A stretch of 64,000 bases of DNA from Macrostomum lignano (lineage: Eukaryota): contig NIVC01000111.1 in assembly GCA_002269645.1 (NCBI GenBank), positions 1 through 64,000 of the forward strand, written 5' to 3'. Below are positions 8,701-46,000 of the stretch, in pieces (position 1 is the stretch's first letter; every line of letters begins with the position of its first letter). The notes under the pieces are model-generated. The model was given only the letters and a program-made list of their open reading frames with translations. It did no database searches and was not told the origin of the DNA. The position numbers and the translations under genes were made by a program.

Positions 8701-10583
8701 GCAAAGTCCGAGCCGATCCCGAGCTGTACCTGGAGGGCACCGGTCATCATAAATCAGCTGCAAGGAGTGCAGATTCATCAACTGATTAGCAGCATTTATC
8801 GCAGCTTTTGAGCTGTGTCGCACAACCAGACAGGTCAGCGAAAGATCTTGATAGATATTTCCGCAGTGGTTGAGCAGCCGCGGTCGCAGATGCACCAGTA
8901 GGCGGTCTCCAATTCTGCGAATTGTTGATGAAAATACAAGACCCCCTCTGTAGCTGGCACCCCCCTCTGTAGCTGGCACCCCCTCTGTAGCTGGCACCCC
9001 CCTCTGTAGCTGGCACCCCCTCTGTAGCTGGCACCCCCTTCTGTAGCTGGCACCCCCTCTGTAGCTGGCACCCCCCTCTGTAGCTGGCACCCCCCTCTGT
9101 AGCTGGCACCCCCTCTGTAGCTGGCACCCCCCTCTGTAGCTGGCACCCCCTCTGTAGCTGGCACCCCCCTCTGTAGCTGGCACCCCCTTCTGTAGCTGGC
9201 ACCCCCTCTGTAGCTGGCACCCCCCTCTGTAGCTGGCACCCCCTCTGTAGCTGGCACCCCCCTCTGTAGCTGGCACCCCCTCTGTAGCTGGCACCCCCTC
9301 TGTAGCTGGCACCCCCTCTGTAGCTGGCACCCCCCTCTGTAGCTGGCACCCCCTCTGTAGCTGGCACCCCCCCTCTGTAGCTGGCACCCCCTCTGTAGCT
9401 GGCGCCCCCCTCTGTAGCTGGCACCCCCTCTGTAGCTGGCACCCCCTCTGTAGCTGGCACCCCCTCTGTAGCTGGCACCCCCTCTGTAGCTGGCACCCCC
9501 TCTGTAGCTGGCACCCCCTTCTGTAGCTGGCACCCCCTCTGTAGCTGGCACCCCCTCTGTAGCTGGCACCCCCTTCTGTAGCTGGCACCCCCTCTGTAGC
9601 TGGCACCCCCTCTGTAGCTGGCACCCCCTCTGTAGCTGGCACCCCCTCTGTAGCTGGCACCCCCTCTGTAGCTGGCGCCCCCCTCTGTAGCTGGCGCCCC
9701 CCTCTGTAGCTGGCGCCCCCTCTGTAGCTGGAACGCCCCTCTGTAGCTGGCGCCCCCCTCTGTAGCTGGCACCCCCTCTGTAGCTGGCACCCCCTCTGTA
9801 GCTGGCACCCCCTCTGTAGCTGGCACCCCCTCTGTAGCTGGCACCCCCTCTGTAGCTGGAACGCCCCTCTGTAGCTGGCGCCCCCCTCTGTAGCTGGCAC
9901 CCCCCTCTGTAGCTGGCACCCCCCTTCTGTAGCTGGCACCCCTTCTGTAGCTGGCACCCCCCTCTGTAGCTGGCGCCCCCTTTGTAGCTGGCACCCCCTC
10001 TGTAGCTGGCGCCCTCCTCTGTAGCTGGCACCCCCCTCTGAAGCTGGCACCCCCTCTGTAGCTGGCGCCCCCTCGGTAGCTGTAGAATAACCTGTAATAA
10101 CTAATTGCCTCACTTGCAATAACTAATCGCCTCACCTGTAATAACTAATTGCCTCACTTGTAATAACTAATCGCCTCACCTGTAATAACTAATCGCCTCA
10201 CCTGTAATAACTAATTGCCTCACCTGTAGTAACTAATTGCCTCATCTGTAATAAATAATTGCCTCACCTGTAATAACTAATTGCCTCACCTGTAACAACT
10301 AATCGCCTCACCTGTAGTAAGCGGCACAGCCGTTAAACAATCGGCCAGCCCAGTATTTCAGCCTCTTTCTTCGCCTGCGACCGCCATCAAACCAGATCAC
10401 ATTGTCTGTCGAGTTTCCGCAAGCCGGCAGAGCCAGCCACGAGTCTGTCTGAAGGCCCGGCCAGTGCCAATGGCGCACCGTGGTGACACTTCGGCTTGGC
10501 AATGACCGGCAATCGTGAATGATTGTAAATAGAAACAGAAATGAGTAGATTAGCAATCCTGAATTATAACAATAAATACGCAT
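5745..10583 (-). CDS. Uncharacterised type-I membrane protein: signal peptide, Cys-containing ectodomain, (RFDHSDS)n repeat, furin-like site, one TM helix
   Basis: Phase-consistent exons 10583-10312, 8914-7789, 7166-6993 and 5877-5745; exon 3 can alternatively read through to a stop at 6798. N-terminus MRIYCYNSGLLIYSFLFLFTIIHDCRS is signal-peptide-like. Contains CPPGT..LGLCRRC, RRSRR|S and TM ISLVVTSFTLIAYLSMPIYVGYVFI. Minus-strand AATAAA follows both possible stops (about 5664-5669 and 6703-6708). Confidence 0.65.
5975..6147. mobile_element. Dispersed repeat (unclassified SINE/MITE-like), copy A
   Basis: Aligns with 47104-47302; shared blocks include TTATTTATCG, ATGTACACTTCACTGTGCCTTGGGG and GGGCCGCTGGCACATCAGAGCGC. 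Confidence 0.7.
6178..6646. repeat. (CCTA)n microsatellite
   Basis: About 470 bp of TACC/CCTA repeats; source of the PTYL ORF. Confidence 0.97.
7200..7778. repeat. Intronic minisatellite, 28-bp unit GGCTGGCCCAGCAACTGAGGATCTGGGA
   Basis: Fills intron 2 (7788-7167) of the membrane-protein gene. Confidence 0.92.
8019..8643 (-). repeat. 21-bp tandem repeat, about 29 copies, probably coding (RFDHSDS)n
   Basis: Unit ATGATCAAAGCGACTGTCGGA on +. Unit length is constant at 21 nt, and the array lies within predicted exon 2 in frame. Confidence 0.85.
8942..10082. repeat. Intronic minisatellite, 18/19-bp unit CCCCCTCTGTAGCTGGCA
   Basis: C-run length varies; lies in intron 1 of the membrane-protein gene. 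Confidence 0.95.
10085..10320 (-). repeat. 22-bp tandem repeat that reiterates the 5' splice site (minus unit GTGAGGCAATTAGTTATTACAG)
   Basis: About 10 copies beginning at the exon-1 donor TACAG|GTGAGG (10312/10311). Confidence 0.85.
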
Positions 10584-23349: not shown

Positions 23350-23715
23350 CAAGGGTCGGAGAACCCAGAGAATCCAGAGCATGACTGCAGGCAGAGGAGG
23401 GGAGAGAGGAGATAGAAGAGAGAAGAGAGGAGAGGAAAGAGGAGAGAGGAGAGGGGAGAAAGCGAGGAGAGAAGATGAGAGGAGAGGAGAGAAAAAGAGA
23501 GGGGAGAGAGAGGAGAGAAGGGAAGAGGAGAGAGGAGAGGAGAGAAAAGAGAAGAGAGGACAGAGGAGATTAGAGAAAAGGGAGCTGAGAAGACAGAGGC
23601 ACAAACCTTGAGTGGGACGGATTGCTATTGTGAAGTTTAAATCAAAGGATCCGAGGGCCGGATAGAGTCTTTGCGGGCCGCATGTGGCCCCCGAGCCGGA
23701 GTTTGCCGACCCCTG
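23350..23715. mobile_element. hAT (Charlie-like) MITE with internal GA-rich tract
   Basis: Imperfect TIRs CAAGGGTCGGAGAAC and (reverse complement) CAGGGGTCGGCAAAC; perfect 8-bp TSD CTCTAACC at 23342-23349 and 23716-23723. Confidence 0.85.
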
Positions 23716-25076: not shown

Positions 25077-27042
25077 AGCCCTTCCCAGTGACCAAGAGTT
25101 GAGCCAGCAGCTGCACTCGGCGCTCACTCAGTCAGGATTCGTGGAATCCAGAGCTGCTCTGCAAAGCGCTATTGCTGACGTGTTGCAGGATATCCTAAGG
25201 AAAAGAGATCACAATGAGCTCTTTGTAGTAGGCAGCTTCTCCGATGGCTGGGGCAATAACTTTAGGACCCTGGACGGCAGAACTGATGTTGACGCCGACA
25301 TTGACATGATGAGGCTGATCCCCGACAAAACGTATCACCCAAGAGGCATTTGCCAGTGTGATGGAGCGTACATCCAGCATGAGTATCGCAACGGCCACAT
25401 TCAGTGCTTCGGATTTGGTGAGACTTCACTTTTAATGCCTGCGCTTCTTTGCGGGATAAAAAATATTCCAATTCCAAATGACATATATTGATCTATTAAT
25501 ATAAACCCATTTTAACCCAGACTCTTTGATTCCTCGAAATGGTCATTTACACGAAAGTGGGTCAAATTCCCAAACATTACAAACATTATGCAAATGTTTG
25601 TACTATGCATTTTCACTGTACCAAACAATTAAATAACATGGGGACGAAAAATCTGACCAACTCTCACCAGAATGGTTTGTCTTTACCTTGGGTCATAAAT
25701 GCGCTCCGTTTGTGTTGCGTATTTTTCTTACTTTATGAATATTCATACAGTGGTTAATAGTTATTTATTATTTATTTAAACACTTACCACAGCCGCTAAA
25801 GGGTCGAGTACAGCTCTCGCGTCGCCTGGGTCCGCCCTAAGACCCGCCGTGGACCTGGTTTTCGCTTGTCGTCTCTGCCGCTATCCTCAGATCGTCTCAT
25901 TATCCAAATTTTTCGAGCCCGTGAGACGGTCGCTGGAGCAGGATTTAGAATCTGCCTCTCTGCCTTGTCACGTGGTGCTGGCAGCCTCACCTGGTCAAAA
26001 AGGAAAGGAGCTACGTGCGAGCACTAGCTTCCTTGAGAAGCGAACGTTGCGAAGCTTAAAAACTATTCAAGGTCAGCTGTTCGTCACACTTAAATATCTA
26101 GTCAAAAAGGTCATCTGTGACAAGTATGGCTTTAATGTAGAAGGTCTGAAGTCTTTCCACGTGAAAATCATTGCATTGCAAATGGTTCAGGAGACACCAA
26201 TGGAACAATGGAAGCCCGAGAATCTCGTGACGCTCACGAGACAGGCGCTGCAGATGCTGCTCAATTGCATAGAAGATAGCAACACGCCTGAAAACACTGA
26301 TGGTCGGATTTTGAGTCATATCTTTCTAAGAGATGCGGCAGTGTACCTCAAGGGTGCAGTCTATGGGGACAGAAACTGGACGGATCAGACTTTGAGAAGC
26401 ATCGCAAGCACATTAAGAACAGTGATAACTCTGCTCCCTCAGTATCTGATGCAGTTCATTGGTAGTCTCAAACGAGTGGTCGAGTTAGACAGGTTTTACT
26501 TCCATCCGTTTCAAATCCTGCCGGATCTGAGTCTTAGGTCCCTAGCGAATTCTAACGGCCCGATAGAGTACCATGAGATCTACGACGTGGTGAGGAAGTG
26601 CGTTGCGCAACTCTCTTTCGAAGATTGTCCAGCAACATCCCGGGAGTCTCTCATGAATCTGATTGCCAGGCTCCCAGACTGTGCTCGCTCAGCACGGGAG
26701 GCACTCAGAGCTCTGTTGCACTTTAAGTTCGGTGATCTGAATTCCGCATTGGAAGTTCTAGGAGAGTGCAGCCGCCACGCAGTAAGCAAAGGTATTGCGT
26801 GGTCTGCTTCAAAACCAGCTACCGAATTCACTGCAGAATATGTGTGGTGCCACCTGAAGAGTGTCGATTCTGCGTGGAGGTTCTGCTTTGAGTTCGATCA
26901 ATTGCCGAAGTTTAATTTTTTGACAAAATCTTTGGCAGACAGTTATCCTACTCAACTCAAAGATATTTGTGAAAACTACTTTTACGTGGACTTTGACAGA
27001 CTTTTGTTAGCGTTGCGACTCGAGCTCGAGCTAAAATGTTAA
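25077..27042 (+). CDS. Mab-21/cGAS-like receptor (cGLR-type) nucleotidyltransferase, paralog 1; start codon unresolved
   Basis: Exons about 25077-25417 and 25793-27042 (phase-1 intron). NTase motif GSFSDGW..DVDADID, third acid in DLVFA, and Mab-21 C-lobe LRASTSFLEK..LK..LKSFHVK..W..L..L.NC..HIFL, followed by a helical C-terminal extension. Confidence 0.85.
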
Positions 27043-27466
27043 CAAAGGTAAGCATGCGAACTTTTATGCCAACAGTACGAACTTTTTGATGAACAGATGA
27101 GCATATTTCAGTCTTTTTTGATTTTTCTCAATATCCTCACTATTCGTTAGTTTAACTACTTACAGTGTACTATGGACAACTGAAGTACATATAGAAAGAT
27201 GATACACTCCCTAGCTTAGCTTCAATAATATTTTTTTCAAACTTTAGATAGAAAAAATGTTGCGGATCAATGTAAACTAGCCACGAGTTTAAATTCTAAT
27301 ATTGACAATTGGCTGAAGAAGCTACAGAAAGCTGAGTCAAACACCGATATTAATAATAAATCTATATGACATTCCATTTGGATTTTTTACGCTGAAATGA
27401 TTTACAAACAAAACCTTATGTAATTGTACGGTGTTTTTTGACAGAATCCATCCTTTTATTTAAAAG

Positions 27467-29647
27467 CTAAACTCGGCGCTCACACTATCCGAATTTGTGG
27501 AATCCAGAGCCGCTCTTCAGAGTGCAGCCGCTGACGTTTTGCAAGAAATACTGAGAGAGAGACAGGAAGCGATGAAAACGTACACAGGTACGGATTACGG
27601 AGCTGCTTTCTTGGTCGGGAGCTTCTCGGACGGTTGGGGCAACAACTTGACAGCAATAAACGGAAGAACTGACTTAGACTCCGATATGGATGTTGTTAGT
27701 CTGATTCCAAAAAAATGTTTCATTTGAAATCGGTGTGCCAGTGCGATGGCGATCCAGACCCGTACGAGCTGATGAACGGCCACATCCAGTACTTTGGATT
27801 CGGTGAGTTCCGCTGCATATGCAATTTGTTCCTTACCTACGTTTCTTTCTCTCTTGTGACGGAGAAAACTGATCAGTTCAGAAAAATTCAGTCGCAGGTT
27901 TTATAATAAATTTTTGTGTAATAGTTAAGGACCAGCGCCCCCAAATTCCCCTTCCCTTCCTGGTCCCTTTCAATCTGCGGAGTCAGCGGAATACAAAACA
28001 TTTTTTCTTCAATCGAGCTCTTTACTGAGAGACTCAATTCACATCTACTGACCTGACATTTGTAAGCTACAGAAATTCTGAAATCAACACCGATTATCTC
28101 GTCCTCAAACCATCTCTATCTCTACCAAGCTGAACAAAATATTTGTCATTCTTTCTTCTGCTTTAAACCATTTATAGCTATTTTATCACTTTGTAGCATC
28201 GAGTCCTGCGATACCATTAACCGGGACAGCCCAGCGTCCAGCCGTGGACGAAGTCTTCGTCCCCCGTCTTTGCCGGTACCCTCCGATTGCGCCCCTGGAG
28301 CTGAGCCGACCGTCAAACATTCCCCAGTCCGTGTTGCAGAGTCTTAAAGACCTTGTAGAATCCAGCTCATCGCCATGTTTCGTGATACACGCAGCCTTTC
28401 CTGGGCAATGTGGCCAACAACTTCGTGTGAGCACCACCCTTCTTGAGCGGTGCATGTTACGAAGCATGACGACTTTGCAGGGTCAGTTGTTCGTCATACT
28501 TAAGTACTTTTTAAAGAAAGTATTAAGTCAACGGACAAGGGGCTTGAAGCCATACCACATGAAGACCATTCTTTTCCGATTGATGGACGAATTGCCCCCC
28601 GAAAATTGGAAAGCTGAGAATCTTGTGGATCTAACCAGGCACGCGATGCAGATGCTGCTTGAATGTGTAGAGAACAGCCGCTCACCTGATAATATTAACG
28701 GTGCTCTGATGAAGCACTTCTTTCTGGAGGACGTTGATGTTTTTCTAAAGGGTGCAGTAGACAGAGACAGAAGTATTGATCGGACTTTTAGTGGCATCTC
28801 GAACGCACTAATAGCAGTGATTGATGAGCTACCTCAGCTACTGTTGCAGTTTATCAGCAGCTTAAGACCTGCTAGTAATTCAGCTGCAAAACCTCGAAGG
28901 TTCAGCTTCCATCCATTCCTAATCCTGCCAGACCTGAGACCTGCAGTGCCCCTCACTATCTTAAACAGCCAAGAGTACCCAGTGCAGTACCACGAGATCT
29001 ACGACGTAGTGAGGGAGTGTCTGATGCATTTTTCCAACAGTGACAACAGCACGAATTGTCAAGCCTCACTCACAAGTCTGATCGCACGACTGCCAGACTG
29101 CGCCCTCTCAGCACGGGAGGCTCTTCGAGTTTTGACCTGTCTGAAGTTCGATGACCGAGAAGGTGCTCAGAGCATCCTGAGCCAGTGCAGAGGCCACTTG
29201 GTGTGCAGAGGCATTGATTGGTCGGCGGACAGGTCAGCAGCTGAGGCTACGGTGCAAAATGTTTGGGAGCACCTGACCAGCCAGAAATCCGCGTGGAAGT
29301 TTTGCTTTGAGTTCGACAAGCAACCTGAATTTCGGTTTTTGCCAGGGGCGCTGAAATACTGCTTTCCTATTCAGCTGCTGGCAAGTAGCGCTAAACACTC
29401 TTACATGAACTTTGACGCTCTTTTATGGGCCCTGCGATTTGAGCTGCAGACTGCAGAAAATCTACCGGGCGCTCAGGACTGGATTCGATTTATAGTAGCC
29501 GAAAGTGAGAATGACGATGAGCAGGAGCTGCTTGTTGCTATTCTGTACTCTCCCGAATCGAGACAAGTCTTGCTAGAAAGATTAATTAATATGAAAGGTG
29601 AAATTCCCGACTGGCTGATGGATGTCTGCTGTCGGGGAGTGGTTTAA
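27467..29647 (+). CDS. Mab-21/cGAS-like receptor nucleotidyltransferase, paralog 2; one -1 frameshift at A7 (27709-27715); 5' end unresolved
   Basis: Exons about 27467-27802 and 28197-29647, with the same intron position as paralog 1. Motifs GSFSDGW..DLDSDMD, DEVFVP, LRVSTTLLER, LKPYHMKTILF and HFFL. Confidence 0.82.
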
Positions 29648-30623
29648 AACTGATCAAATTTATGCCAACATTTCAATTCTTCTCCTAAATCAGTAAGCAT
29701 GAAAACTATAAACAATAGTTTACTTTGGCTGATAGTGTTTGTAAAGAGTTATTTTGGCAATTTAACTGAAATTCGCATGAATCCCGGACGCTACTGCTTG
29801 TAGTTAAATTATTTTTTCTATTGTAATTTTATTAGAAGTACTTTTAGTATTTATCTTGAGGCTATTGCGAATTCATTGTGCTTGCACTCTTTTGCTAACT
29901 TTTCATGACATTTGTTACGGTTCCGTATTTTCACGATTTTTTAAATATGTTGTCCAGTATACTAAAACTGAAGCTGTACCTATCTATCTAGCCATAGCAA
30001 TGCTCTCTTGAGCTTAGTAATAGACAGGACCAATTTTTGAATTTCATTTTTTACTATATTGACCACCTAAAATGTATGTATAGCTAAATGTTAGATTTTT
30101 ATACTGTATTCTACCACAATATTTAATTTTATTATGTATGGTTATGGTTTCTTATTCTTCTAAGAAACCTCGCGAGCATTGATAGGCTGTGTAAGTTGTA
30201 CACGTTCGTCTCCTATATGTAATCAATATGGTTTTGAAGTGATACATTTTGGCCCTGAAAAATTCCATCCTGTCTGAATGTACTTCCAACCAATCAATGA
30301 GATCTAAAAAACACAAGCTGATCCGACACGATCCCAAGTCTCAGCAAATTAAAAGTAGTCATGTACCATCTAAATTATTCCCCAATGCAAAAGACTGAAA
30401 ATGCTAGCTCATATATAAACCGATGTTGAAATTATTAAATCAAGCAAGAAGCTCGATTGCAATTCAGATAAAATATTCTGCTGCATACACTTTGTCATTT
30501 TAGTAGCCCCTTGGAAAACATCCCGATGATAAATACACCACTAATTGCTGATTCATATAATTTGAGATCAATCAGTGTTTCAAGACTGACGCCCTTCAAG
30601 GTTTCCAAGGTTGTGAATAAACT

Positions 30624-31984
30624 GAACGAAACGAAACGCGGCCCAGGCCAGTCCTCGTCGTCTTATCAGGTCGTCGGCAATGTCCAGCACGAGGCTGCCG
30701 AGGTACAGGAACCGCTGACAGCGGGTAAGCATGATTGCCTCCCCGGCAGTGTCTCGGTAGTTGATCTCGGCAGGCAGGTCCGAGGGCTCCGTGAAGACTA
30801 CCGTCTTCCGCGCGTTCAGCATGAGGCCGACTCGCGATGCTGCTGCCTTCAAGCCGCCCAGCAGCAGCTGAGCGCCTTCAGCCGTCGATGACAGCAGCGC
30901 GAGGTCATCCGCGTAGCCGAGAACGGAGAGCCGCTTCTCCGGGTGCCGCCGACTCGTGCGTCTTCTCAGCAGGAAGCCGTCATCCGTGTTGGGCAGGCCG
31001 GTCTTCAACACCCAATCCAATGCCAGCACAAACAGGAAAGGCACCAGAGTGTCACCCTGCAGCACGCCTGACGACGTGTTGAATTGGTCCGACAGTCCAT
31101 CTGGCGTCATCACCGAAGCGGTCGCATCCCGATACATCACCATGATGGCGGAAATCAGTTGTACATTGTACGCTCGAAGCACGAGAGGCAGCGCGACGCG
31201 AACCAGCGAGTTGAAAGCCTTGAGGAAGTCAATGAAGATCACCACGAGACTTTACTGATGGATGCGCGCCTCTTTGATGATCCGGCGGAGGGCTAGGATC
31301 TGCGTCACTGTACCGCGATGTGGGCGGAATCCGTTCAGCTCAGGGCGCAGAAACTGGTCCGACACAGGCTGCAACCGAGCTAGCAGCACGCGGTTGAACA
31401 GCTTCGCGGCGCAGGACATGAGCGAGATCCCCTTGTGCTCCTCCTTCCGTGTCGTGCCTTGCTTCTTTGGGATCGCGACTATGTGCGCGGTTGTCCACTC
31501 GCGGGGCGCGGCACCTCCAGATATATTGCGTTTCGTTCTGTGCGCTCCGTGCTCCATTCTGAGGTCCTGGATGACGAGACTGTCTTGTTGTACAACGCCG
31601 AGACCTGGACCCTGACGGACGCCCTGGAGAGGCAGCTGGATGCAGCGCATGCGGCCATGCTGCGTGCGGCGTTCAGAGTGTGCAGCGGCCCAGGCAGCGA
31701 GACCAACGGCGCGCTCTACACAAGGGTAAGCCTGATGCGGCCTTCTGACCTGCTGCGCGGGCGGCGAGTTCGATAAGCTGGCCACGTCATCCGGTCGGAG
31801 GCCCACTGCCCTGAGCCGCTATACGAAGTGCTACACGAAGGCGCGAGATATCCTGATGGGCTTTTGACCGATGCTGGCGCCCCGGGCTAAGCTGGGTGTG
31901 ACTTTTTGAGGGCTATGGCCCAGAGACGCGCTCTCTGACTTCTCCCCCCTTTCTGGCCACTGCGTGGCTGGCGGGTGAAGTATT

Positions 31985-32341: not shown

Positions 32342-34722
32342 CTATCTCGGGAAAAGCGGCAAAGTTGCTGTATCGGAGCCCCCGTAGGAGAAATAGGCCT
32401 TGCCAAACTCTGGAATGTACTTCCCGGAGCACCATTCCCCGTTGACGGTCGCCCTGGCAACGTACACGGGCTTGGCCTGGTCCGAGCCGCCGATCAGAGC
32501 GTATTTTGGGGCCTCGTCGCTGCCGCCACTCCACGGCACCCACTGGTATCCCGGGCTGCCAGACAGGCCGACATTGACGGTCTCGCACAGTACCTGCGCG
32601 CGTGTATGCAGTATGATGTTAGTTACTAGAGCTGCTATCAATTACGGGGGGGGGGGTCGTAGCCAAGTGGTTAGAGCGTCGAACTCGATCACGAATCGAA
32701 GGTCGGGGTTTGATTCCCGATCCCACTGGAACAATTTGTGTCTTTGAGCAAGACACTTAACTCTGCATTGCTTCAGTCCACCCTGCTGTAAAATGGGTGC
32801 CAGCATTAGCTGGGGTAATTGAGGGTGTGTGCAGCGACCCTCCCAGTCTTTGGACTGAACAGCCGTACGCAGCCTTCAGATGCGCCTCACAATAGCTGCG
32901 GCTGAGCTGTCGGTTGCACATCTGGCCCATTCGGGTCAGTCGGGTCAATCAATTATATTATTAATATTATAATCAATTCAATTATTCAAGAAAATCGGCG
33001 CGGCCAACAACAAAGCTTGGACACCCGTGACGCACGGCATTGCACAACTATCACAGGCCTTTCTACTAATCGTGCTGGTTGTGGGCGCGATTGATCTTTC
33101 AGAGGGGCCATGACTACGAGATCTAATCATCTCTGAGATTAGAAAGCTGCGATTGACAGATGCGTCTCTGTGGACCCGTCGATCTGTTGTTTAAGTTGAT
33201 CCAATGTTTATGAAAATTGTAGAAAGTGCAAAAGCAGCTTCAACTTGCTGGTTTGGGAGTCACCGATGACGCAACTGGACGCTTGGATGGACCATGTTAA
33301 TATTGCGCGCGATAGTGACAAAGATTCTGATACTGATACCAACAACTATTGATTCTTGTTAGTAATGAACACTTAATCATAGTCTATTTAGGGCCCATAT
33401 AGCAAAACAACGTTTTAGTTCGATTTTAAACTGTATTTCTTCCGCCGTCACTACACATTCTTAGTTTCGTTGCACCCAAAAAACTTTAGATCGTACGTAT
33501 TACGAGCTACCAACTGTGACGAAGTTATTAATATCTTTATTTTATATGAACTATTAGAAGATAATGTCGCGGAGTTATTAAGATGTTTTATTTAATACGG
33601 ACTATTGGTGCCGTGTTGAGCGTTAATTCAATCTAATGACAATACAAATATTGATATCGCTTTTGACGCTCTAGATAAGACTTTAGACATTCAAAATAAG
33701 ACTGCATAGGATCGCAAGCAAGGCCAGGCTAGCCACGGCCAGAGCAAGCCCAGTCTTGGCTGCAGGGATGGATATGCTATTCTGCTTCTTGTTTATTGCC
33801 TAATTTCTCCTTAGCTGTTTGTATGGTGACTGCCAAAAAGCAAATAAATTACGTTCACTCCCGGTCTCATATTGAGCGTCTTATTCTCATTTTGATATTC
33901 CATTTTTTAGTCTATGGCCAAGCCATCCCTGCAGCCAAGACTGGGCTTGCTCTGGCCGTGGCTAGCCTGGCGTTGCTTGCGATCCTATGCAGTCTTATTT
34001 TGAATGTCTAAAGTCTTATCTAGAGCGTCAAAAGCTATACTAATCCTAGCAATATAGCAAGACAGCTTTAGTGTAGCAATGCCTACTAGTTGCGCATATG
34101 CAAGATCCTATTGAGTCTATTAGCTCGAACTAACGTTGATGCCTGGCCTACAGAAGAACTAACACTCAGCGCGCGCGGGACACTCACACGGCAAAACTAA
34201 CAAGAAACCAAATTTGAATCAGACCAAATTTGAACAAAGATAAATTAATGAGGGAAATTAATTGAAAAACAGAAAGAAACATGAGACCAAAATAAATATA
34301 GTATTAACTATTAATTCCAACAGTAATCCTAAAACACAATAGAAAACTGCAATAACAGGGTTCGCTCGCATTTTTTTCTATGCAACTTACTGGCTCATCA
34401 TCCCTGATCACCCTGTTATTGCAGTTTTCTATTGTGTTTTAGGATTGCGTTGGTGGCGACATCTTTGTAGCCGACGACGTCACACAACCATTCTCACCTG
34501 GTAATCAGTGTAGGTCTTCTCCTCGGTGCCGTACGGTGCAAAGCAGAACTGGTGACCATTAGCCACCTTGCCCGGCAACTGTTCGCGCTCGTGTAGGCAC
34601 CTGGCTACAAAGACGTCGCCACCAACGCACACAGCGCCATCTGGGATCTCTCCATTGGCTGCTCTGATCCAGGACAGGCAGAGATCCACGCCTTTGCCGC
34701 TGCTGCTCTTGTAGATGCTCAT
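32342..34722 (-). CDS. DM9-repeat protein, paralog 2 (158 aa), last strand of repeat 2 replaced
   Basis: Exons 34722-34498 and 32593-32342; same intron position as paralog 1. MSIYKSSSGKGVDLCLSW..PGKVANGH..YQ|VLCET..GKYIPEFGKAYFSYGG, then unrelated SDTATLPLFPR*. Confidence 0.85.
32646..32955 (+). mobile_element. tRNA-derived SINE with a CORE-like central block
   Basis: A box TAGCCAAGTGG, B box GGTTTGATTCCC, then GTGTCTTTGAGCAAGACACTTAACTC..CAGTCCACCC.GCTGTAAAATGGGT. AT-rich tail; possible TSD ATCAATTA (32637-32644 and 32948-32955). Lies in the DM9-2 intron. Confidence 0.85.
33659..34035. mobile_element. Foldback/MITE with 113-bp near-perfect terminal inverted repeats
   Basis: 33659-33771 is the reverse complement of 33923-34035 (one mismatch seen); 151-bp spacer; no clear TSD. 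Confidence 0.8.
34325..34446. repeat. Perfect 36-bp inverted repeat with 50-bp spacer
   Basis: 34325-34360 is the reverse complement of 34411-34446. Confidence 0.85.
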
Positions 34723-35139
34723 GCTTTGCTTGCGTTTTTTCAAATGAAGATTATTGCCGAGTGCGGGTGTATCCGTTCTAGCCCGGTTGTAGAGCGGCCT
34801 AGCAATAGCTATTACATGCATGCAGCACCGCAACCTCATTCAGTCATGCAGCTGGACGTGGAAAGGAAAGTTCTACGCGTCACTCCTATTGCTTTGGCAA
34901 TGATTTTCTTGCGGTGACTAATAAGCTAGCATAACCGCAAATGTATTTGTTACTGCAGTGTCAGCCAGTAAGTGTTTACGTGACTCTGCAGTTGCCAATT
35001 GAGAGTCGTAGCCAAGTGTCCAGAGTGCCATAAATGGAAAGTAAAAAGTTACCTACGCAGGATCGCTTAGTAGCAGGCAGGGAGAGCAGAACTAAATCTT
35101 GATAGTCTGACCCACGACGGCGCCCTCTTCCCAGTAGCT

Positions 35140-35790
35140 CTGTCGCCCCCTTCCCAGTATATAGCCTTGGCGCCCCTTCCCAGTACAGCCTTGGCGCCCC
35201 CTTCCCAGCACAGCCTTGGCGCCCCCTTCCCAGTAGCTCTGTCGCCCCCTTCTCAGTATAGCCTTGGCGCCCCCTTCCCAGTACAGCCTTGGCGCCACCT
35301 TCTCAGTACAGCCTTGGCGCCCCCTTTGCAGTACAGCCTTGGCGCCCCCTTCCCAGTACAGCCTTGGCGCTCCCTTCCCAGTACAGCCTTGGCGCCCCCT
35401 TCCCAGTACAGCCTTGGCGCCCCCTTCCCAGTACAGCCTTGGCGCCCCCTTCCCAGTACAGCCTTGGCGCCCCCAATTTCCAGTATAGCCTTGGCGCCCC
35501 CAATTTCCAGTATAGCCTTGGCGCCCCCTTCCCAGTATACCCTTGGCGCGCCCAATGTCCAGTATAGCCTTGAATTGGCGCCCCCTTGCCATAGCCTTGG
35601 CGCACACTTTCCAGCAGTATAGCCTTGGCGCCCCCTTCCCAGAATAGCCTTGGCGCCCTCTTCCCAGTATAGCCTTGGCGTCCCCCTTCCCAGTATAGCC
35701 TTGGCGCCCCGAATTTCCAGTAGCCTTGGCCCTTCACAGTAGCTTTAATTTGTCGCCACCTTCCCCAGTAGCTTTGCGCGCCCTCCGCCA
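35140..35790. repeat. Minisatellite, about 25-bp unit CCCAGTACAGCCTTGGCGCCCCCTT
   Basis: Intergenic tandem array between DM9-2 and clathrin. Confidence 0.92.
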
Positions 35791-37061: not shown

Positions 37062-40000
37062 ATGTCTCAGACAATTCCTATTAAGTTCCAAGAACATTTC
37101 CAGGTAAGTCTAAAAAAAATCGGTTTTTACAGATAAACGAGTATGTATACATGTGTACTAGGCCTACAACTAGTACTCGCCACTAAATAGTGTTAGTTAA
37201 TCTTTATTGCTCAGGCTTCACCTTGCATGTCAGTATTTATAGTTCTATCATCTCCTTTTCTTTTTTCTCTTTCTGTTTTATACTTTATTCTTATTAAATC
37301 CTTTATTTAGCCTTCAGGCCAGACTTTTTTGCTCTATGCTATTGTGTGTTGCTATAGGCCTAAATATTTAACCTATAAACAGAATTTTTTACTTTTTAAT
37401 ATTCTTAAAATTTCTTAAAATATTTTTTAAGAATGTTTTAAATTAAAAAGCTTGGTAAAGCTTTTTCAATGTCCAAGTTATAATTTATGGCTGCTAGCTA
37501 CCCATAGGCCTAGCTACATCTACATGTTCTTATTATGATCCGTATAATATAGCATTATTAGGGTTAAGATTAGCATAGTTTATTTTAAATAAAAATATAT
37601 AACTATATATGTAGTATAGGCCTTAAGGCATTTAACTAATTATCACGTTTAAGAAAGTTATATGTTATCTTAAACTAGGCATATGCCTATTTAATTTATT
37701 TTCTGATTCAACTCAATGAATTTATGCTTATTTATTGTAAAGGGACCTAGTTTAAACTCAACTTTCTTGATTTATTTTTTTTATTAGCTCTATTATTTCC
37801 TCATTTTTTCTGTCTTTTTGTTTTATACTTTATTCTTATCAAATCTTTATTTAGCCCTTTGCTTAAGCCAAAGATTTTTTGCTATATGCTATTGTATATT
37901 GCTAAATAAATATTTTAAGGGTTAGAAAATATTGAAGTTTAAAGATTTTGAGATGGGGGAGAAGAAAAGGAAAAAAAATAATTTAATTTATTTGAATATT
38001 TTCATGTTTGACATTAGTCAGTTTCTGACACCAATTTAGGTGGGATGGTTTAACTTTGAATTGCCACCTGCATTGTCTTGGCACTTGTAAAGCCGGAAAA
38101 TCTAACAAACTAATACATTTAGCTTTTCTGTTGATACTTCGTCTGCTAGGTCCTCAATTCCAGGGGTAGGATAGTTATAATTTGCAGTTAGGCAGTCTTT
38201 TAATGGCACAGTCATTCAATTGAGTCTTTAGATACAATAAATTTTGTAATCTGTCCATATGCTCAGTTTGTTACTATCAGTAGTAAAGTAGTACTACCAC
38301 CATTGTAATTTCGTATTACAGAATATTTAGGGCCTCAAGCTTTCTTTGAGATAAGACTAATTGGTTGTTTCATGCCCCGTGGGCAAATGACTCAATAGAA
38401 ACTAAAGGCTTCAATTAGGAATGAGTGTATAAATATTGTTGTCACTTATTAATATTTAACACTGGATAGGCATTAGTTAAACAAATTACTAAGAATTACT
38501 AATGTATTATTATTATTAATTGTTAATTCACTATGACAAGAGTAGATTTGGCACAGCCAAGAGCAATTAATGAAATAAATTGGGGTTATGCACTGAGCAA
38601 ATGAGAGATTAGCTATGGTCCAAAACAGAACCAGAACAAAAGTAAGAGAAAAGGGTGTTGAAAACTGAAACTGAACATGCAAGAATTTATACATAGAACT
38701 CGGCTAATTCCTGGGAATGGGACACAAGGGGGAATACTGGGTGGAACACATGAGGGAAAAAGGAATAAAACCGGCAGTGGATATATGGTAAAACATATTA
38801 AAACAAGGATGGGACCAGGGAAAGGACCAGCAAATAAGTCATAATGCCAATAAAAGTTAAATATTTTTTTTAATCTGTAAATTTTTCTAGTAGTCTTAAA
38901 TCTAAAATTTGTAGCATTTTTATATTTATTTTATTATTTTAATATAACAATAACATGGATAATGAAGTTCTTTGCTATCTTTTCTCACTATTTGAAATTT
39001 TCCTCACTAATGCAAACCTTTTCATCACTTTTCGGAACTTTTCCTGAGTACTTTAAAGTCATTAAAACTTATCAGTATAGGAAATGTTTAGTTTTGTGGT
39101 TTGTCAGGATTAGGAAGGGGATAGCAGCAATTAGTAAAGGTATAAATAAAGATTTTCTATGTTCAATCTGTGCATACAATGTATGAGTATGTAACACTCA
39201 GTTAATTTTTTGTTACAAATTATTAATGCATTAATTTGTGCATAGGCATGAAAGGTGAGCGAGATGCACAGAAAAGGCACTTTAGGGGTCTATTGAATGT
39301 TTTGGAAATGCACCTGTATACATATTTACACCGCACATGTACACCTTATGCACCTCTAATTCACCTTTTGTGCACTTTCTGCGCCCCTTCAGCACCTTTC
39401 CTACACCTGCTGTGCCTCACTTGTGAGCCTACTATTTATTCACTTTTTGTGTACCTCCAGTGCCCCTTACGCACCTTTAGTGCCCCTACCGCTGCAACCA
39501 ATCAAAATTGAGAATTCACCTACTGCCTGACCACTTCACCAATTTTACACCTTTCATGCCTCTTTTCAAAAATATTGGTGACATTTAGGCATAAAAGGTG
39601 CAGTCAGGTGCATTTCTAAAACACACACAAAATAGGCCACTAAGGTGTCTCTTTTGTGCACCTCGCTCACCTTTTATGCCTCTGCAGGTGCATAATTTTT
39701 CCAATGGGTATACTAACTATAAACTTAGGAAAGTTTATTATCTTTATTGATTCTTGATATAATTCTTATTCTTTAATATATTATATATAAATACTAAGCT
39801 ATAGCCTAGTGGTCTATTGTGATGCTTTGATGTGCTAGTGGCCTAGACTTCTTTCCAAGTGCAGCCATATTACTTTGGGGATAAATTGTAATCTTGGCTT
39901 AGGGCTGCTTGTGCAATGAATTCCCCCCAAAGCACAGTGAAAGGTCTTGTTAAGATTTGTTATGTTCAAAGACACTACGTGGTTGGACTCAAACTCTACT

Positions 40001-43000
40001 GAGGTTAAGCAACCACCAGTTTGCTTATGTACTTCAATTCTATTGAAACTCTACTGAGGTTAAGCAACCACCAGTTTGCTTATGTACTACAATTCTATTG
40101 AAACTCTACTGAGGTTAAGCAACCACCAGTTTGCTTATGTACTTCAATTCTATTGAAACTCTACTGAGGTTAAGCAACCACCAGTTTGCTTATGTACTAC
40201 AATTCTATTGAAACTCTACTGAGGTTAAGCAACCACCAGTTTGCTTATGTACTTCAATTCTATTGAAACTCTACTGAGGTTAAGCAACCACCAGTTTGCT
40301 TATGTACTTCAATTCTATTGAAACTCTACTGAGGTTAAGCAACCACCAGTTTGCTTATGTACTTCAATTCTATTGAAACTCTACTGAGGTTAAGCAACCA
40401 CCAGTTTGCTTATGTACTTCAATTCTATTGAAACTCTACTGAGGTTAAGCAACCACCAGTTTGCTTATGTACTACAATTCTATTGAAACTCTACTGAGGT
40501 TAAGCAACCACCAGTTTGCTTATGTACTTCAATTCTATTGAAACTCTACTGAGGTTAAGCAACCACCAGTTTGCTTATGTACTTCAATTCTATTGAAACT
40601 CTACTGAGGTTAAGCAACCACCAGTTTGCTTATGTACTTCAATTCTATTGAAACTCTACTGAGGTTAAGCAACCACCAGTTTGCTTATGTACTTCAATTC
40701 TATTGAAACTCTACTGAGGTTAAGCAACCACCAGTTTGCTTATGTACTTCAATTCTATTGAAACTCTACTGAGGTTAAGCAACCACCAGTTTGCTTATGT
40801 ACTTCAATTCTATTGAAACTCTACTGAGGTTAAGCAACCACCAGTTTGCTTATGTACTACAATTCTATTGAATAAAAACCCCTGTGCTCAACCCAACCCA
40901 GCTGCAAAACATCGGCATCAACAATGCCAGCATCGGCTTCTCCACGCTCACCATGGAGTCAGACCGGTTCATCTGCGTCCGCGAGAAAGTCGGTGAAACC
41001 GCCCAGGTAGTGATTGTGGACATTAACGATCACAGCAACCCCACTAGGCGGCCAATATCAGCCGACAGCGCCATCATGAATCCTGTCAGCAAGGTGATCG
41101 CTCTGAAGGCTGGCAAAAGCTTGCAGATTTTCAATATCGAATTGAAATCTAAGATGAAGTCGCACACGATGACTGAGGATGTCACTTTCTGGCGCTGGAT
41201 CACCGTAAATACTATTGGCATAGTGACGGAGACTGGAGTGTACCACTGGAGTCTGGAGGGCGACTCTGGCCCGGTTAAGATGTTTGACAGGTGAGACTGT
41301 TTGGCTTGGGTACACGAGTATATGAGATTCTTCCCGAAATTCGCCTACTATCACGGAAGATTTTTGTTCATAAAATTCTCCGTTCTCTCACACAATGCCA
41401 CCAAAAATTCTTAGAAAATTCCCCTTTAGGTACTCTCCCTTCTTTTTCTAATGAGAAACTCCTCAAAAGATTCTACATTCTTTGAAAGATTCCCCTTTAG
41501 CGGTTCCCCGTTCTTAGAAAGATTCCCCTCTAGTGATTCTCCATTTTCTCGAAAGATTCCCCTCTAGTGATTCTCCATTTTTAGAAAGATTCCCCTCTAG
41601 TGATTCTCCATTCTTAGAAAGATTCCCCTCTAGTGATTCTCCATTTTTAGAAAGATTCCCCTCTAGTGATTCTCCATTCTTAGAAAGATTCCCCTCTAGT
41701 GATCATTCTCGATTCTTTGAAAGATTCCCCCTCTAATGATTATCCATTCTTAAAAAGATTTCCCTCTAGAGTTTCTATTCTTTAAAATATTCCTCTCTAG
41801 AGGTCTGTTCTCCCAGCTATAATAAATTCCCCTCGAGAGATTCTCTTCATCGGAATCACAACAAATCACCGCCGTTCTTTAGTTATATCCCTTTAGAAGT
41901 CTTTCTTAATTCCCCCAGAAATTCTCTTGAGCTCACTATCACCCCCCCCCCTTCGCGATGAAACCCGGCAGGCACGCCTCCCTGTCCGGCTGTCAGATCA
42001 TCAACTACCGCTCGGACACCAGCCAGAAGTGGCTGCTCATCATTGGCATTTCGGCGCAGCAGAATCGCGTAGCCGGAGCCATGCAGCTGTACAGCGTCGA
42101 GCGCCGCGTCTCCCAGCCAATCGAAGGCCACGCCGGCGTGTTTATCGAGTTCAAATTGGAGGGCAACGCCTCCCCGTCTAACCTGTTCTGCTTTGCTAAC
42201 CGGGGAGTACAGGTAATATTATGATTGTATAAATCAAGTCTTTACTAGGCAATAGTGTTGAACCCATCCTATTCATATTCCTACCTATATCTTGCTTACA
42301 GATTTTTTGATTCCCTCTCTGAGATTCCCCATCTGATTCCCCTCTGAGATTCCCCATCTGATTCCCCTCTGAGATTCCCCATCTGATTCCCCTCTGAGAT
42401 TCCCCATCTGATTCCCCTCTGAGATTCCCCATCTGATTCCCCTCTGAGATTCCCCATCTGATACCTTCTCGGAGATTTCCCGACTCTACTACCCCTCTAA
42501 GTAAAAGTACGAGTAAATTATTCGATCCTGCAAACTAATTATCCTTTAAAATTCCTCTCCCTAAACCCGAACCGGCAGGCCGCCAAGCTGCACGTGATCG
42601 AGGTGGGCCAGCCCGCTGCCGGCAACCAGCCCTATCCCAAGAAGCAGATCGATTTGTTCTTCCCGCCGGAGGCTACCTCCGATTTCCCGGTTGCTATGCA
42701 GGCCTCGCCTAAGCACGGCATCGCCTACCTGGTGACTAAATACGGCTACATTCACATGTACGACATGGACACGGCTACGTGCCTGTACATGAACCGGATC
42801 AGCAGTGAGACCATTTTTGTCACGGCTCCGCACGAACCCAGCGGTGGAATCATTGGCGTCAATAGGAAGGGTCAGGTGCTGAGCGTCAGCCTTGATGAGG
42901 ACAATGTTATCAGTGAGACTCTTGGCTTATTGCTCATTTTGGCTTCATAAAATCATTTTGCTTCATTTGGCTTCATTTTGGATCATCCCCTGACAATTTT

Positions 43001-46000
43001 GTTTATCCTCCCCTGACAATTTTGTTTATCCTCCCCTGACAATCTTGTTTATCCTCCCCTGACACTCTTGTTTATCCTCCCCTGACAATTTTGTTTATCC
43101 TCCCCTGACAATCTTGTTTATCCTCCCCTGACACTCTTGTTTATCCTCCCCTGACAATTTTGTTTATCCTCCCCTGACAATCTTGTTTATCCTCCCCTTG
43201 ACACTCTTGTTTATCCTCCCCTGACAATCTTGTTTATCCTCCCCTTGACACTCTTGTTTATCCTCCCCTGACACTCTTGTTTATCCTCCCCTTGACAATC
43301 TTGTTTATCCTCCCCTGACACTCTTGTTTATCCTCCCCTTGACACTCTTGTTTATCCTCCCCTGACACTCTTGTTTATCCTCCCCTGACACTCTTGTTTA
43401 TCCTCCCCTTGACACTCTTGTTTATCCTCCCCTGACACTCTTGTTTATCCTCCCCTGACACTCTTGTTTATCCTCCCCTGACAATCTTGTTTATCCTCCC
43501 CTGACACTCTTGTTTATCCTCCCCTGACACTCTTGTTTATCCTCCCCTGACACTCTTGTTTATCCTCCCCTGACAATTTTGTTTATCCTCCCCTTGACAC
43601 TCTTGTTTATCCTCCCCTGACAATTTTGTTTATCCTCCCCTTGACACTCTTGTTTATCCTCCCCTGACAATTTTGTTTATCCTCCCCTTGACACTCTTGT
43701 TTATCCTCCCCTTGACACTCTTGTTTATCCTCCCCTGACACTCTTGTTTATCCTCCCCTGACACTCTTGTTTATCCTCCCCTGACAATCTTGTTTATCCT
43801 CCCCTGACACTCTTGTTTATCCTCCCCTGACACTCTTGTTTATCCTCCCCTGACACTCTTGTTTATCCTCCCCTGACAATTTTGTTTATCCTCCCCTTGA
43901 CACTCTTGTTTATCCTCCCCTGACAATTTTGTTTATCCTCCCCTTGACACTCTTGTTTATCCTCCCCTGACAATTTTGTTTATCCTCCCCTTGACACTCT
44001 TGTTTATCCTCCCCTGACAATTTTGTTTATCCTCCCCTTGACACTCTTGTTTATCCTCCCCTGACAATCTTGTTTATCCTGCCCTTGACCCTTGAAATCT
44101 TGTGTATCCTCCCCGTAGGATTTTTGGGTGTCTTAAGAACTCAGCCCTTAGATATTATGTAACTAGCCCTGAGATCTCATAACCAACCTTGAGGTTTGAC
44201 CTAACCAGGCTCTGAGGTCTCACAAAACCAGGCCCCGAGGTTGAGATCTCACATAAACAGCCCTGAGATCTCACCCTGAGATTCGCGCCCCTATTCCGCC
44301 ACCCGCAGGCTATGTGACCAACAACCTGCAGAACCCGGACCTGGCACTGAAGCTGGCCTCGCGCAACAATCTTCAAGGCGCTGACGACCTGTTCCTGCGC
44401 AAGTTCAACAGCCTGTTCCAGCAGGGCAATTACTCTGAGGCTGCCAAAGTGGCCGCCAGCGCTCCTAAGGGCATCCTGAGGACTCCGCAAACTATTCAAC
44501 GATTCCAACAGGTGCCAGTGCAGCCAGGGACCACCTCGCCAATGCTGCAGTACTTCACCATCCTGCTTGACCAGGGCCAGCTCAACAAATACGAGAGCCT
44601 GGAGCTGTGCCGCCCCGTGCTGCAGCAGGGCCGCAAACAGGTGGTAGAGAAATGGCTCAAAGAGGACAAGCTGGAATGCTCTGAAGAGCTGGGAGATCTG
44701 GTTAAGCAGACCGATCCAACTTTGGCTTTGAGTGTCTACCTGAGAGCCAATGTGCCGCATAAGGTTATCCAGTGCTTCGCAGAGACTGGGCAGTTCCAGA
44801 AGATCGTGCTCTACGCTAAGAAGGTAAGCCAGAATCATCCTCAAAGCACCCCTGGAATCGCCCTGAAAGCACCCCTAGAATCACCCTCAAAGCAACCCAT
44901 AGAATCGCCCTCAAAGCACCTCTAGAATCGCCCTCAAGGCACCCCTAGAAACGCCCTCAAAGCACCCCTAGAATCGCCTTTAAGGCACCCCTAGAATCGC
45001 CTTTAAGGCACCCCTAGAATCGCCTTTAAGGCACCCCTAGAATCGCCCTCAAACCACCCCTAGAATCGCCCTCAAGGCACCCCTAGAATCGCCCTCAAAC
45101 CACCCCTAGAATCGCCCTCAAAGCACCCCTAGAATCGCCTTCAAATCACCCCTAGAATCGCCCTCAAACCACCCCTAGAATCGCCCTCATGGCACCCCTA
45201 GAATCGCCCTCAAATCACCCCTAGAATCGCCCTCAAAGCACCTCTAGAATCGCCCTCAAAGCACCTCTAGAATCGCCCTCAAAGCAACCCTAGAATCGCC
45301 CTCAAAGCACCGCTAGAATCGCCCTCAAAGCACCCCTAGAATCGCCCTCAAAGCACCCCTAGAATTGCCTTTAAGGCACCCCTAGAATCGCCCTCAGAAC
45401 TTATCAAGACAATTAGACAAATCACGCAATAATCCTACATCCGTTGCTATGCCATTGCCACCCGCCCCAATCCGCAGGTTGGCTACTCGCCAGACTACAT
45501 CTTCCTGCTGCGCAACCTGATGCGCATCAATCACGAGCAGGGACTCCAGTTCGCCCAGATGCTCGTGCAAGATGACGAGCCCCTAGCCGACATCAGCCAG
45601 ATTGTCGACGTGTTCATGGAGCAGAATCTCGTCCAGCAGTGCACCAGCTTCCTGCTAGACGCTTTGAAGAACAATCGGCCTAGCGAGGGTCACCTGCAGA
45701 CTCGCCTGCTGGAGATGAACCTCATGTCTGCGCCGCAGGTGGCCGACGCCATCCTTGGCAACCAGATGTTCTCGCACTACGACAAGGCGCACATTGCCAG
45801 CCTGTGCGAGAAGGCCGGCCTGCTGCAGCGGGCTCTGGAGCACTACACCGACCTCTACGACATCAAGCGGGCCGTGGTGCACACGCACATGCTCAACCCG
45901 GAGTGGCTGGTCAACTATTTTGGCAATCTAAGCGTTGACGACTCGCTGGAATGCTTGAAGGCCATGCTGCAGGCCAATATTAGACAGAACCTGCAGGTCT

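Follow-up and report, generated by a model that had tools for sequence, protein, structure and literature searches.

The window analyzed here comprises the first 64,000 nucleotides (64 kb) of contig NIVC01000111.1 of the Mlig_3_7 assembly of the flatworm Macrostomum lignano and harbors, at positions 25077-29647, two head-to-tail plus-strand genes of two exons each, referred to as G1 and G2. Their products are predicted, from the sequence and from a structural model, to adopt a cGAS-type fold with a catalytic triad and an R-x-S-x-S nucleotide-pocket strand. Taken together, the evidence is probably best explained by regarding G1 and G2 as tandem, ankyrin-less paralogues within a large M. lignano expansion of cGAS-like receptors (cGLRs), i.e., nucleotidyltransferases (NTases) of the Mab-21 type, which would synthesize a cyclic (di)nucleotide upon ligand binding. 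The family itself is already catalogued as cGLR and has been sampled biochemically; G1 and G2 are additional members. The two paralogues, G1 (25077-27042) and G2 (27464-29647), are separated by 421 bp and encode proteins that are 51% identical (BLASTP, E 7e-179). An initial annotation, made from the letters alone, had described them as a tandem gene pair with intact catalytic residues. The catalytic residues are indeed intact in G1, those of G2 are interrupted by a 1-nt frameshift in the sequence as assembled, and a defined start codon is missing from both genes.

The active site of G1 reads VVGS53-X20-D74-I-D76-M-X55-V-D134-L, where GS denotes G52-S53. Its coordinates (GS at 25231-25236 and D74/D76 at 25297-25305 in exon 1, third Asp at 25852-25854 in exon 2) bear out the GS/DxD motif and third acid proposed initially, as do those of G2 (GS at 27617-27622, D74/D76 at 27683-27691, third Asp at 28247-28249). 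The motif of G2, LVGS53-X20-D-M-D-V-X52-V-D-E, is obtained only once the 1-nt deletion is repaired, being split across two frames as assembled. Li et al. 2023 (PMC9980059) define cGLRs by the pattern h[QT]GS-[X8-20]-[DE]h[DE]h-[X50-90]-h[DE]h, to which G1 and repaired G2 conform in everything but the Val that precedes GS. In alignments of 20 and of 14 family members, G52, S53, D74, and D76 are invariant or nearly so, and the same is true of D134, R188, S190, H87, C92, C94, H107, and C142; the smaller alignment takes in five published M. lignano cGLRs, and there GS, D74, and D76 are invariant and D134 nearly so. Four of these residues (H87, C92, C94, and H107) belong to a conserved His/Cys insertion that separates the strand of the DxD motif from that of the third acid.

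Based on the family alignment, AlphaFold2 modeled G1 with a predicted local distance difference test score (pLDDT) of 86.4 and a predicted template modeling score (pTM) of 0.88. The model places GS after the first strand, the DxD motif at the opening of the second, and D134 on a later strand. When the model was compared with the Protein Data Bank (PDB) by Foldseek, the top 50 matches were all cGAS, with E values down to 3.4e-8, a probability of 1.0, and template modeling (TM) scores of 0.53-0.61 on the target over 360-400 aligned columns, so that the structural check suggested in the initial annotation came out in favor of a cGAS-like fold. Sequence profiles point the same way. A first profile search of the PDB, in which ankyrin columns were included, was dominated by ankyrin proteins; the family profile without the ankyrin part matched only cGAS, cGAS-like receptor 1 (PDB 8GJY, E 2.4e-6), and MAB21L1, the best E value being 2.6e-8. 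By hhalign, the family was aligned with 97.8% probability (E 9e-13) over G1 residues 112-328, i.e., the third-acid strand and C-lobe, to cGAS of human and mouse aligned with three cnidarian cGLRs, the sequences being taken from Table S3 of PMC9980059. This alignment pairs D134 with human D319, R188-x-S190-x-S192 with WRLSFS, and RYP with SWP, the latter two pairs being the altered C-lobe signatures that had been remarked upon initially, and leaves a gap at the position of the cGAS zinc thumb. Among Pfam profiles, Mab-21_C (PF20266, gathering threshold 24.1 bits) is matched by G2 at 30.5 bits (E 4e-7) and by 14 of 14 family members at E values up to 0.1 (best 8.6e-13), and UniProt names the family 'Mab-21-like HhH/H2TH-like domain-containing'. 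The Foldseek and hhalign matches, as well as the Pfam match of G2, are far stronger than would arise by chance. Homology across the NTase core and helix bundle and predicted structural homology to cGAS/CD-NTase enzymes, which Li et al. 2023 also use to define cGLRs, are both found. Vertebrate-type cGAS, a dsDNA sensor, is marked by a zinc thumb of the form H(X5)CC(X6)C and by a surface that binds DNA and is strongly basic; both hallmarks are absent from G1 and G2.

Spliced G1 (25077-25417 joined to 25793-27042) provides an open frame of 529 codons. Exon 1 (25077-25417) encodes the spine helices and the N-lobe of the NTase core; exon 2 (25793-27042) encodes the third Asp, the R-x-S-x-S strand in the form ELRASTS, the Mab-21 C-lobe, and a C-terminal domain (approximately 26470-27039), and ends with TAA. 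In G2, homology to G1 exon 1 extends from LNSAL on in exon 1 (27464-27802), while exon 2 (28197-29647) carries the third Asp, QLRVSTT, Mab-21_C, and the C-terminal domain together with an acidic tail (approximately 28835-29644), followed by the stop codon. The introns, of 375 bp in G1 (25418-25792) and 394 bp in G2 (27803-28196), are both GT-AG introns in phase 1 and occupy the same position: they split the Ala codon of Gly-[Phe/Tyr]-Ala, which follows G-F in G1. The shared intron noted initially is found not only in G1 and G2 but also in the paralogues P0003 (L002) and P0001 (L003), which lie on other contigs, and in an environmental relative (L004).

Homologue searches returned 27 clusters for G1 and 24 for G2, all from M. 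lignano but for one metagenome contig and one MetaClust entry, and ten further representatives at 50% clustering were without exception from M. lignano (10 of 10). A search of a library of 1.84 billion proteins, carried out with an alignment that included ankyrin columns, was swamped by ankyrin proteins and served only to pick representatives. The environmental relative (L004 149-2528; JGI metagenome 3300040801, contig Ga0450804_4230032) is ankyrin-less and about 40% identical, and it has its own ATG (MSDSHISQQLHSAL...), the GS/DxD motif, and the same phase-1 intron. Since it lies on an environmental contig, the family exists outside the M. lignano assembly. The lineage-specific cGLR family put forward in the initial annotation is thus restricted to M. 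lignano among relatives of identified source, but its novelty was overstated, the family being already present in PMC9980059.

For that survey, five M. lignano cGLRs were cloned and screened (Table S3, samples 89-93: PAA86972.1, PAA45980.1, PAA57558.1, PAA93208.1, and PAA68676.1; PMC9980059). They are 29-38% identical to G1 over the construct and have all family motifs in common with it; GS[FY][AS][ED][GA]WG...SD[IV]D, RVS[TF]S, LQGQ, GLK.YH.K, HFF, and FHPF are shared with G1 and G2. Sample 90 (PAA45980.1) falls into one of the representative clusters and sample 89 (PAA86972.1) into the cluster of P0032. The full-length proteins of the five samples likewise derive from similarly numbered gene copies (Mlig012742g1/g2, Mlig022265g1-g5), but on different contigs, and those of samples 89 and 90, which measure 952 and 936 aa, bear N-terminal ankyrin repeats, unlike G1 and G2. 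Ankyrin-fused cGLRs were remarked on in the same paper, with M. lignano accessions in its domain table (PMC9980059). As deposited, G1 (unannotated) and G2 (a truncated annotation) lack the 'complete active site' by which Li et al. selected their sequences. Neither PAA90375.1, the database entry for G2, nor five paralogue accessions were found in the accessible part of the tables that supplement the survey (PMC9980059), and M. lignano is missing from the cGLR/STING count table as far as that table could be consulted.

Several differences exist between G1/G2 and the known systems despite their relatedness. Vertebrate cGAS (PDB 4K97, 6CT9) has in common with them the bilobal Mab-21 NTase fold, the register of GS, acid-h-acid, and third Asp, the R-x-S-x-S strand, and the SYHxK helix of the C-lobe. 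Identity is as low as 12-16%, however, and G1 and G2 possess neither the H(X5)CC(X6)C zinc thumb nor a basic N-terminal tail, but instead have a neutral to acidic isoelectric point (pI), a His/Cys insertion, and an extra C-terminal domain of about 200 aa. Invertebrate cGLRs (PDB 8GJY, Drosophila cGLR1, and those of oyster and coral) resemble the M. lignano family in being thumb-less and in forming lineage-specific expansions. While stand-alone enzymes make up 87% of cGLRs according to Li et al. 2023 (PMC9980059), the M. lignano family adds a conserved C-terminal domain without a known fold relative and often ankyrin repeats. MAB21L1 and MAB21L2 contain the same PF20266 C-lobe, and MAB21L1 is a marginal profile match (E 0.49). 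No functional active site is predicted in Mab21L proteins (legend to Figure 1 of Li et al., PMC9980059), in contrast to the G1/G2 family, in which the triad is conserved.

The C-terminal extension of about 200 aa, recognized initially, was confirmed in both proteins and features invariant FHPF, IY, and P.C motifs. In G1 (residues ~340-529), it is predicted to form a mixed domain of helices and small strands, with a pLDDT of 75 when modeled alone. It corresponds to no Pfam family, and neither a PDB sequence match below E 0.05 nor a Foldseek match better than E 1.0 was obtained. The last ~70 aa found in G2 and most paralogues are lacking in G1; P0016 is similarly short. N-terminal ankyrin repeats occur in many family members, whereas G1 and G2 are ankyrin-less within the window.

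By analogy with other cGLRs, an intact member of the family would remain switched off in the absence of a ligand, whose binding site would lie away from the active site. Once the ligand is bound, the enzyme would join two NTPs on two Mg2+ ions, and a downstream receptor would read the resulting cyclic (di)nucleotide. The C-terminal domain, joined in paralogues by the ankyrin repeats, is a likely ligand- or partner-binding module, and the ligand may be something other than a nucleic acid. The nucleic-acid-sensing cGLRs of Li et al. have pI values above 8.5 (PMC9980059); the near-neutral pI of G1 (7.3) and the acidic pI of G2 (5.6) argue against a simple nucleic-acid sensor.

A number of observations weigh against regarding G1 and G2 as working cGLRs, at the level of profiles, of function, and of gene structure. 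PF03281, the profile proposed for checking the assignment in the initial annotation, was not matched by any family protein scanned, and to PF20266, which is matched instead, G1 scores 18.7 bits, i.e., below the gathering threshold that G2 exceeds. A profile restricted to the N-lobe gave a non-significant alignment to cGAS (E 0.033); in its register, GS falls on G212/S213 and D74/D76 on E225/D227 of the human protein. The residue before GS is Val where the cGLR motif expects Q or T. The 'Note' field that marks the 15 active enzymes in the survey is blank for samples 89-93 (PMC9980059), which therefore do not belong to the 15 enzymes designated as active in the dsDNA/dsRNA screen, and neither enzymatic activity nor ligand, product, or receptor has been reported for any M. 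lignano family member. As to gene structure, a strong acceptor (ttttag|A, 25075-76, phase 2) marks the beginning of G1 exon 1, which contains no in-frame ATG before GS; no gene is called in the G1 region of NIVC01000111.1 in the transcript-based GenBank annotation of the assembly (GCA_002269645.1); and exon 1 of G2 has suffered, relative to G1, P0001, and L004, a 1-nt deletion near or in a run of seven A residues (27709-27715, plus strand).

These structural defects form the basis of the alternative that survives best, a real if minor possibility, according to which one or both of G1 and G2 are young pseudogenes that decay in a tandem family of fast turnover and give rise to no full-length enzyme. 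The deletion in G2 lies between the DxD motif and the third acid and thus splits the active site over two frames: the frame with GS and D-M-D stops at TGA 27725-27727, and the remainder (MFHLKSVCQCDG... onwards) reads in another. The protein P0015 (PAA90375.1, BOX15_Mlig001763g2, 512 aa; CDS, i.e., coding sequence, 27715-29647) matches G2 with 100% identity from the ATG at 27715 on. Because of the deletion, this GenBank model is truncated; it starts past the frameshift and lacks GS and DxD. No intact near-identical second copy of G2 was found in the protein collection searched. On the other hand, the indel is situated near or in a homopolymer, which is a typical site of consensus errors in an assembly that we take to be PacBio-based, so that such an error is plausible. 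For G2, the choice lies between inactivation by a very recent frameshift and mis-assembly at the homopolymer. Comparable irregularities occur elsewhere in the family. In P0001 (L003 7988-8003, contig NIVC01001460.1), whose CDS is flagged as partial in GenBank, the homologue of G1 exon 1 opens with an ATG that directly adjoins the acceptor yet is shifted by 1 nt against the conserved ORF, and the database model of P0014 starts at such a wrong-frame ATG and then rejoins the conserved frame; the two models suggest indel errors or mis-modeling in several family members.

The absence of a start codon from the first recognizable exon of either gene also enters into the case for pseudogenes. In G2, an in-frame TAA (27461-63) stands directly upstream of the homologous exon, for which 27443-44 and 27465-66 are candidate acceptors. 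G1 lacks, besides the ATG, a called gene. Its acceptor is homologous to those of P0001 and L004, however, and is conserved with paralogues whose gene models extend upstream. Downstream of the acceptor, the L004 exon contains an ATG (MSDSHISQQLHSAL); the corresponding codon is CCC in G1 and P0001, whose frame is open back to the acceptor, implying an upstream coding exon. G1 is probably a functional but unannotated gene requiring a further upstream exon. Such an exon did not come to light in the window: a hidden Markov model of the paralogue ankyrin region, run at maximum sensitivity against all six-frame open reading frames (ORFs) of the window, yielded no ankyrin exon for G1 or G2, and tblastn of at least 190 family proteins against the window detected nothing outside 25077-29647, a lack of family exons that would fit decaying genes. 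The spliced leader of M. lignano ends in ATG (PMC8629364), which raises the idea that this ATG might supply the start of G1 and G2. It would do so in frame only at weak alternative acceptors, namely 27465-66 for G2 and the AG at 25097-98 for G1, and would be out of frame at the strong conserved acceptor of G1 at 25075-76.

The coding sequence itself speaks against decay: the ORFs of G1 and G2 are free of stops over 529 and 596 codons, the single indel aside. Differences between the two genes at codon positions 1, 2, and 3 amount to 0.34, 0.26, and 0.54; the proportions of non-synonymous (pN) and synonymous (pS) differences are 0.285 and 0.70, respectively, and the ratio of the corresponding rates (dN/dS) is ~0.18, with dS near saturation. 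At sites conserved in the family, the deviations of G1 and G2 are mostly conservative and no commoner than in other divergent members. The synonymous excess and the conservative nature of the changes show that G1 and G2 have been protein-coding for most of their history, their divergence having taken place under purifying selection. Regarding them as paralogues within the cGLR expansion is preferred to regarding one or both as young pseudogenes.

A second alternative, which we consider improbable, retains catalysis but assigns to the family a different chemistry, either the synthesis of linear 2′-5′ oligonucleotides in the manner of OAS or the nucleotidylation of a substrate, protein or RNA, that the C-terminal domain or ankyrin repeats would present, instead of the synthesis of cyclic dinucleotides upstream of STING. 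A triad of this kind is common to NTases of the Pol-beta type, the GS(x)3G(W)G...SDIDh pattern with its long 20-residue spacer is unusual among cGLRs, the five screened paralogues fall outside the designated active enzymes, and other flatworms are reported to be without STING. In contrast, the best fold and profile matches are all cGAS or cGLR rather than OAS, PAP, or TUTase, and the RxSxS strand and Mab-21 C-lobe are kept. That the proteins are non-catalytic scaffolds like MAB21L1/2 or MiD49/51, binding nucleotide or partner without turnover, is very improbable: Mab-21_C is the only Pfam domain detected, ankyrin repeats and C-terminal domain dominate the architecture, and no activity is reported, but GS, D74, and D76 are invariant and D134 nearly so across members 27-60% identical, which would be unexpected if catalysis were dispensable, and MAB21L1 is the weakest of the PDB profile matches.

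The reading of G1 and G2 as members of a cGLR expansion has to be seen against what is known of other flatworms. The initial annotation stated that flatworms have been described as lacking cGAS-STING signaling, and the literature agrees. Schistosoma has been described as being without cGAS-STING (Wu et al., PMC4117786), neither cGAS nor STING was found in Schmidtea in a 2026 study (PMC13563047), and according to Li et al. 2023, cGLRs are missing from 'most platyhelminthes', MAB21L proteins being the only cGLR-like proteins reported in most flatworms (PMC9980059). A bolder scenario, which we hold to be rather unlikely, is that Macrostomum, as an early-branching flatworm, kept and greatly expanded its cGLRs while other flatworms lost the whole pathway. 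Its enzymes would then be independent of STING, and the C-terminal domain and ankyrin repeats would sense non-nucleic-acid ligands or couple the enzymes to a new receptor or effector.

A purine-rich (AGAGG/GGAGAGA)n low-complexity tract (23393-23584) lies about 1.5 kb upstream of G1. Just downstream of G2, two adjacent ORFs of 221 and 184 aa on the minus strand (30580-31806) match RVT_1 and are broken at 31245/31252, representing a degraded retroelement. The cGLR pair is adjoined by an annotated gene for a 197-aa DM9-domain (PF11901) protein (32342-34839, minus strand); in some invertebrates, proteins with DM9 domains serve as lectins in pattern recognition. Between this gene and a clathrin heavy-chain gene (from 37062, plus strand), a 25-bp tandem repeat (GGCGCCCCCTTCCCAGTACAGCCTT; 35119-35710) is present in ~23 copies with 84% matches and yields long spurious ORFs on both strands. 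The clathrin gene carries a string of minisatellites within 40000-45400, comprising 16 copies of 55 bp at 99% identity (40000-40872), 10 of 33 bp, 7 of 25 bp, 47 of 23 bp (42982-44085), and 25 of 23 bp (44831-45396), to which the strong negative GC and AT skew of this region is due. Farther away, the contig starts with a dynein heavy-chain fragment (219-932, plus strand; AAA_9, E 1e-47), and a GC-rich region (0.59) at 7654-10135 has long ORFs that overlap one another on both strands and in several frames, with a maximum of 821 aa; Pfam gives this region just a weak sub-threshold match to Exonuc_VII_L (25.8 bits).

The locus adds two members to the catalogue of M. lignano cGLRs, one (G1) unannotated and the other (G2) mis-annotated as a truncated protein. 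Its practical value lies in the corrected gene model and in the pointer to a conserved C-terminal domain without known fold relatives. What the ~30 or more paralogue clusters sense and make, and whether STING reads the product, are questions already posed by the 2023 survey. The family shows that cGAS-like enzymes have been kept in at least one lineage of flatworms.

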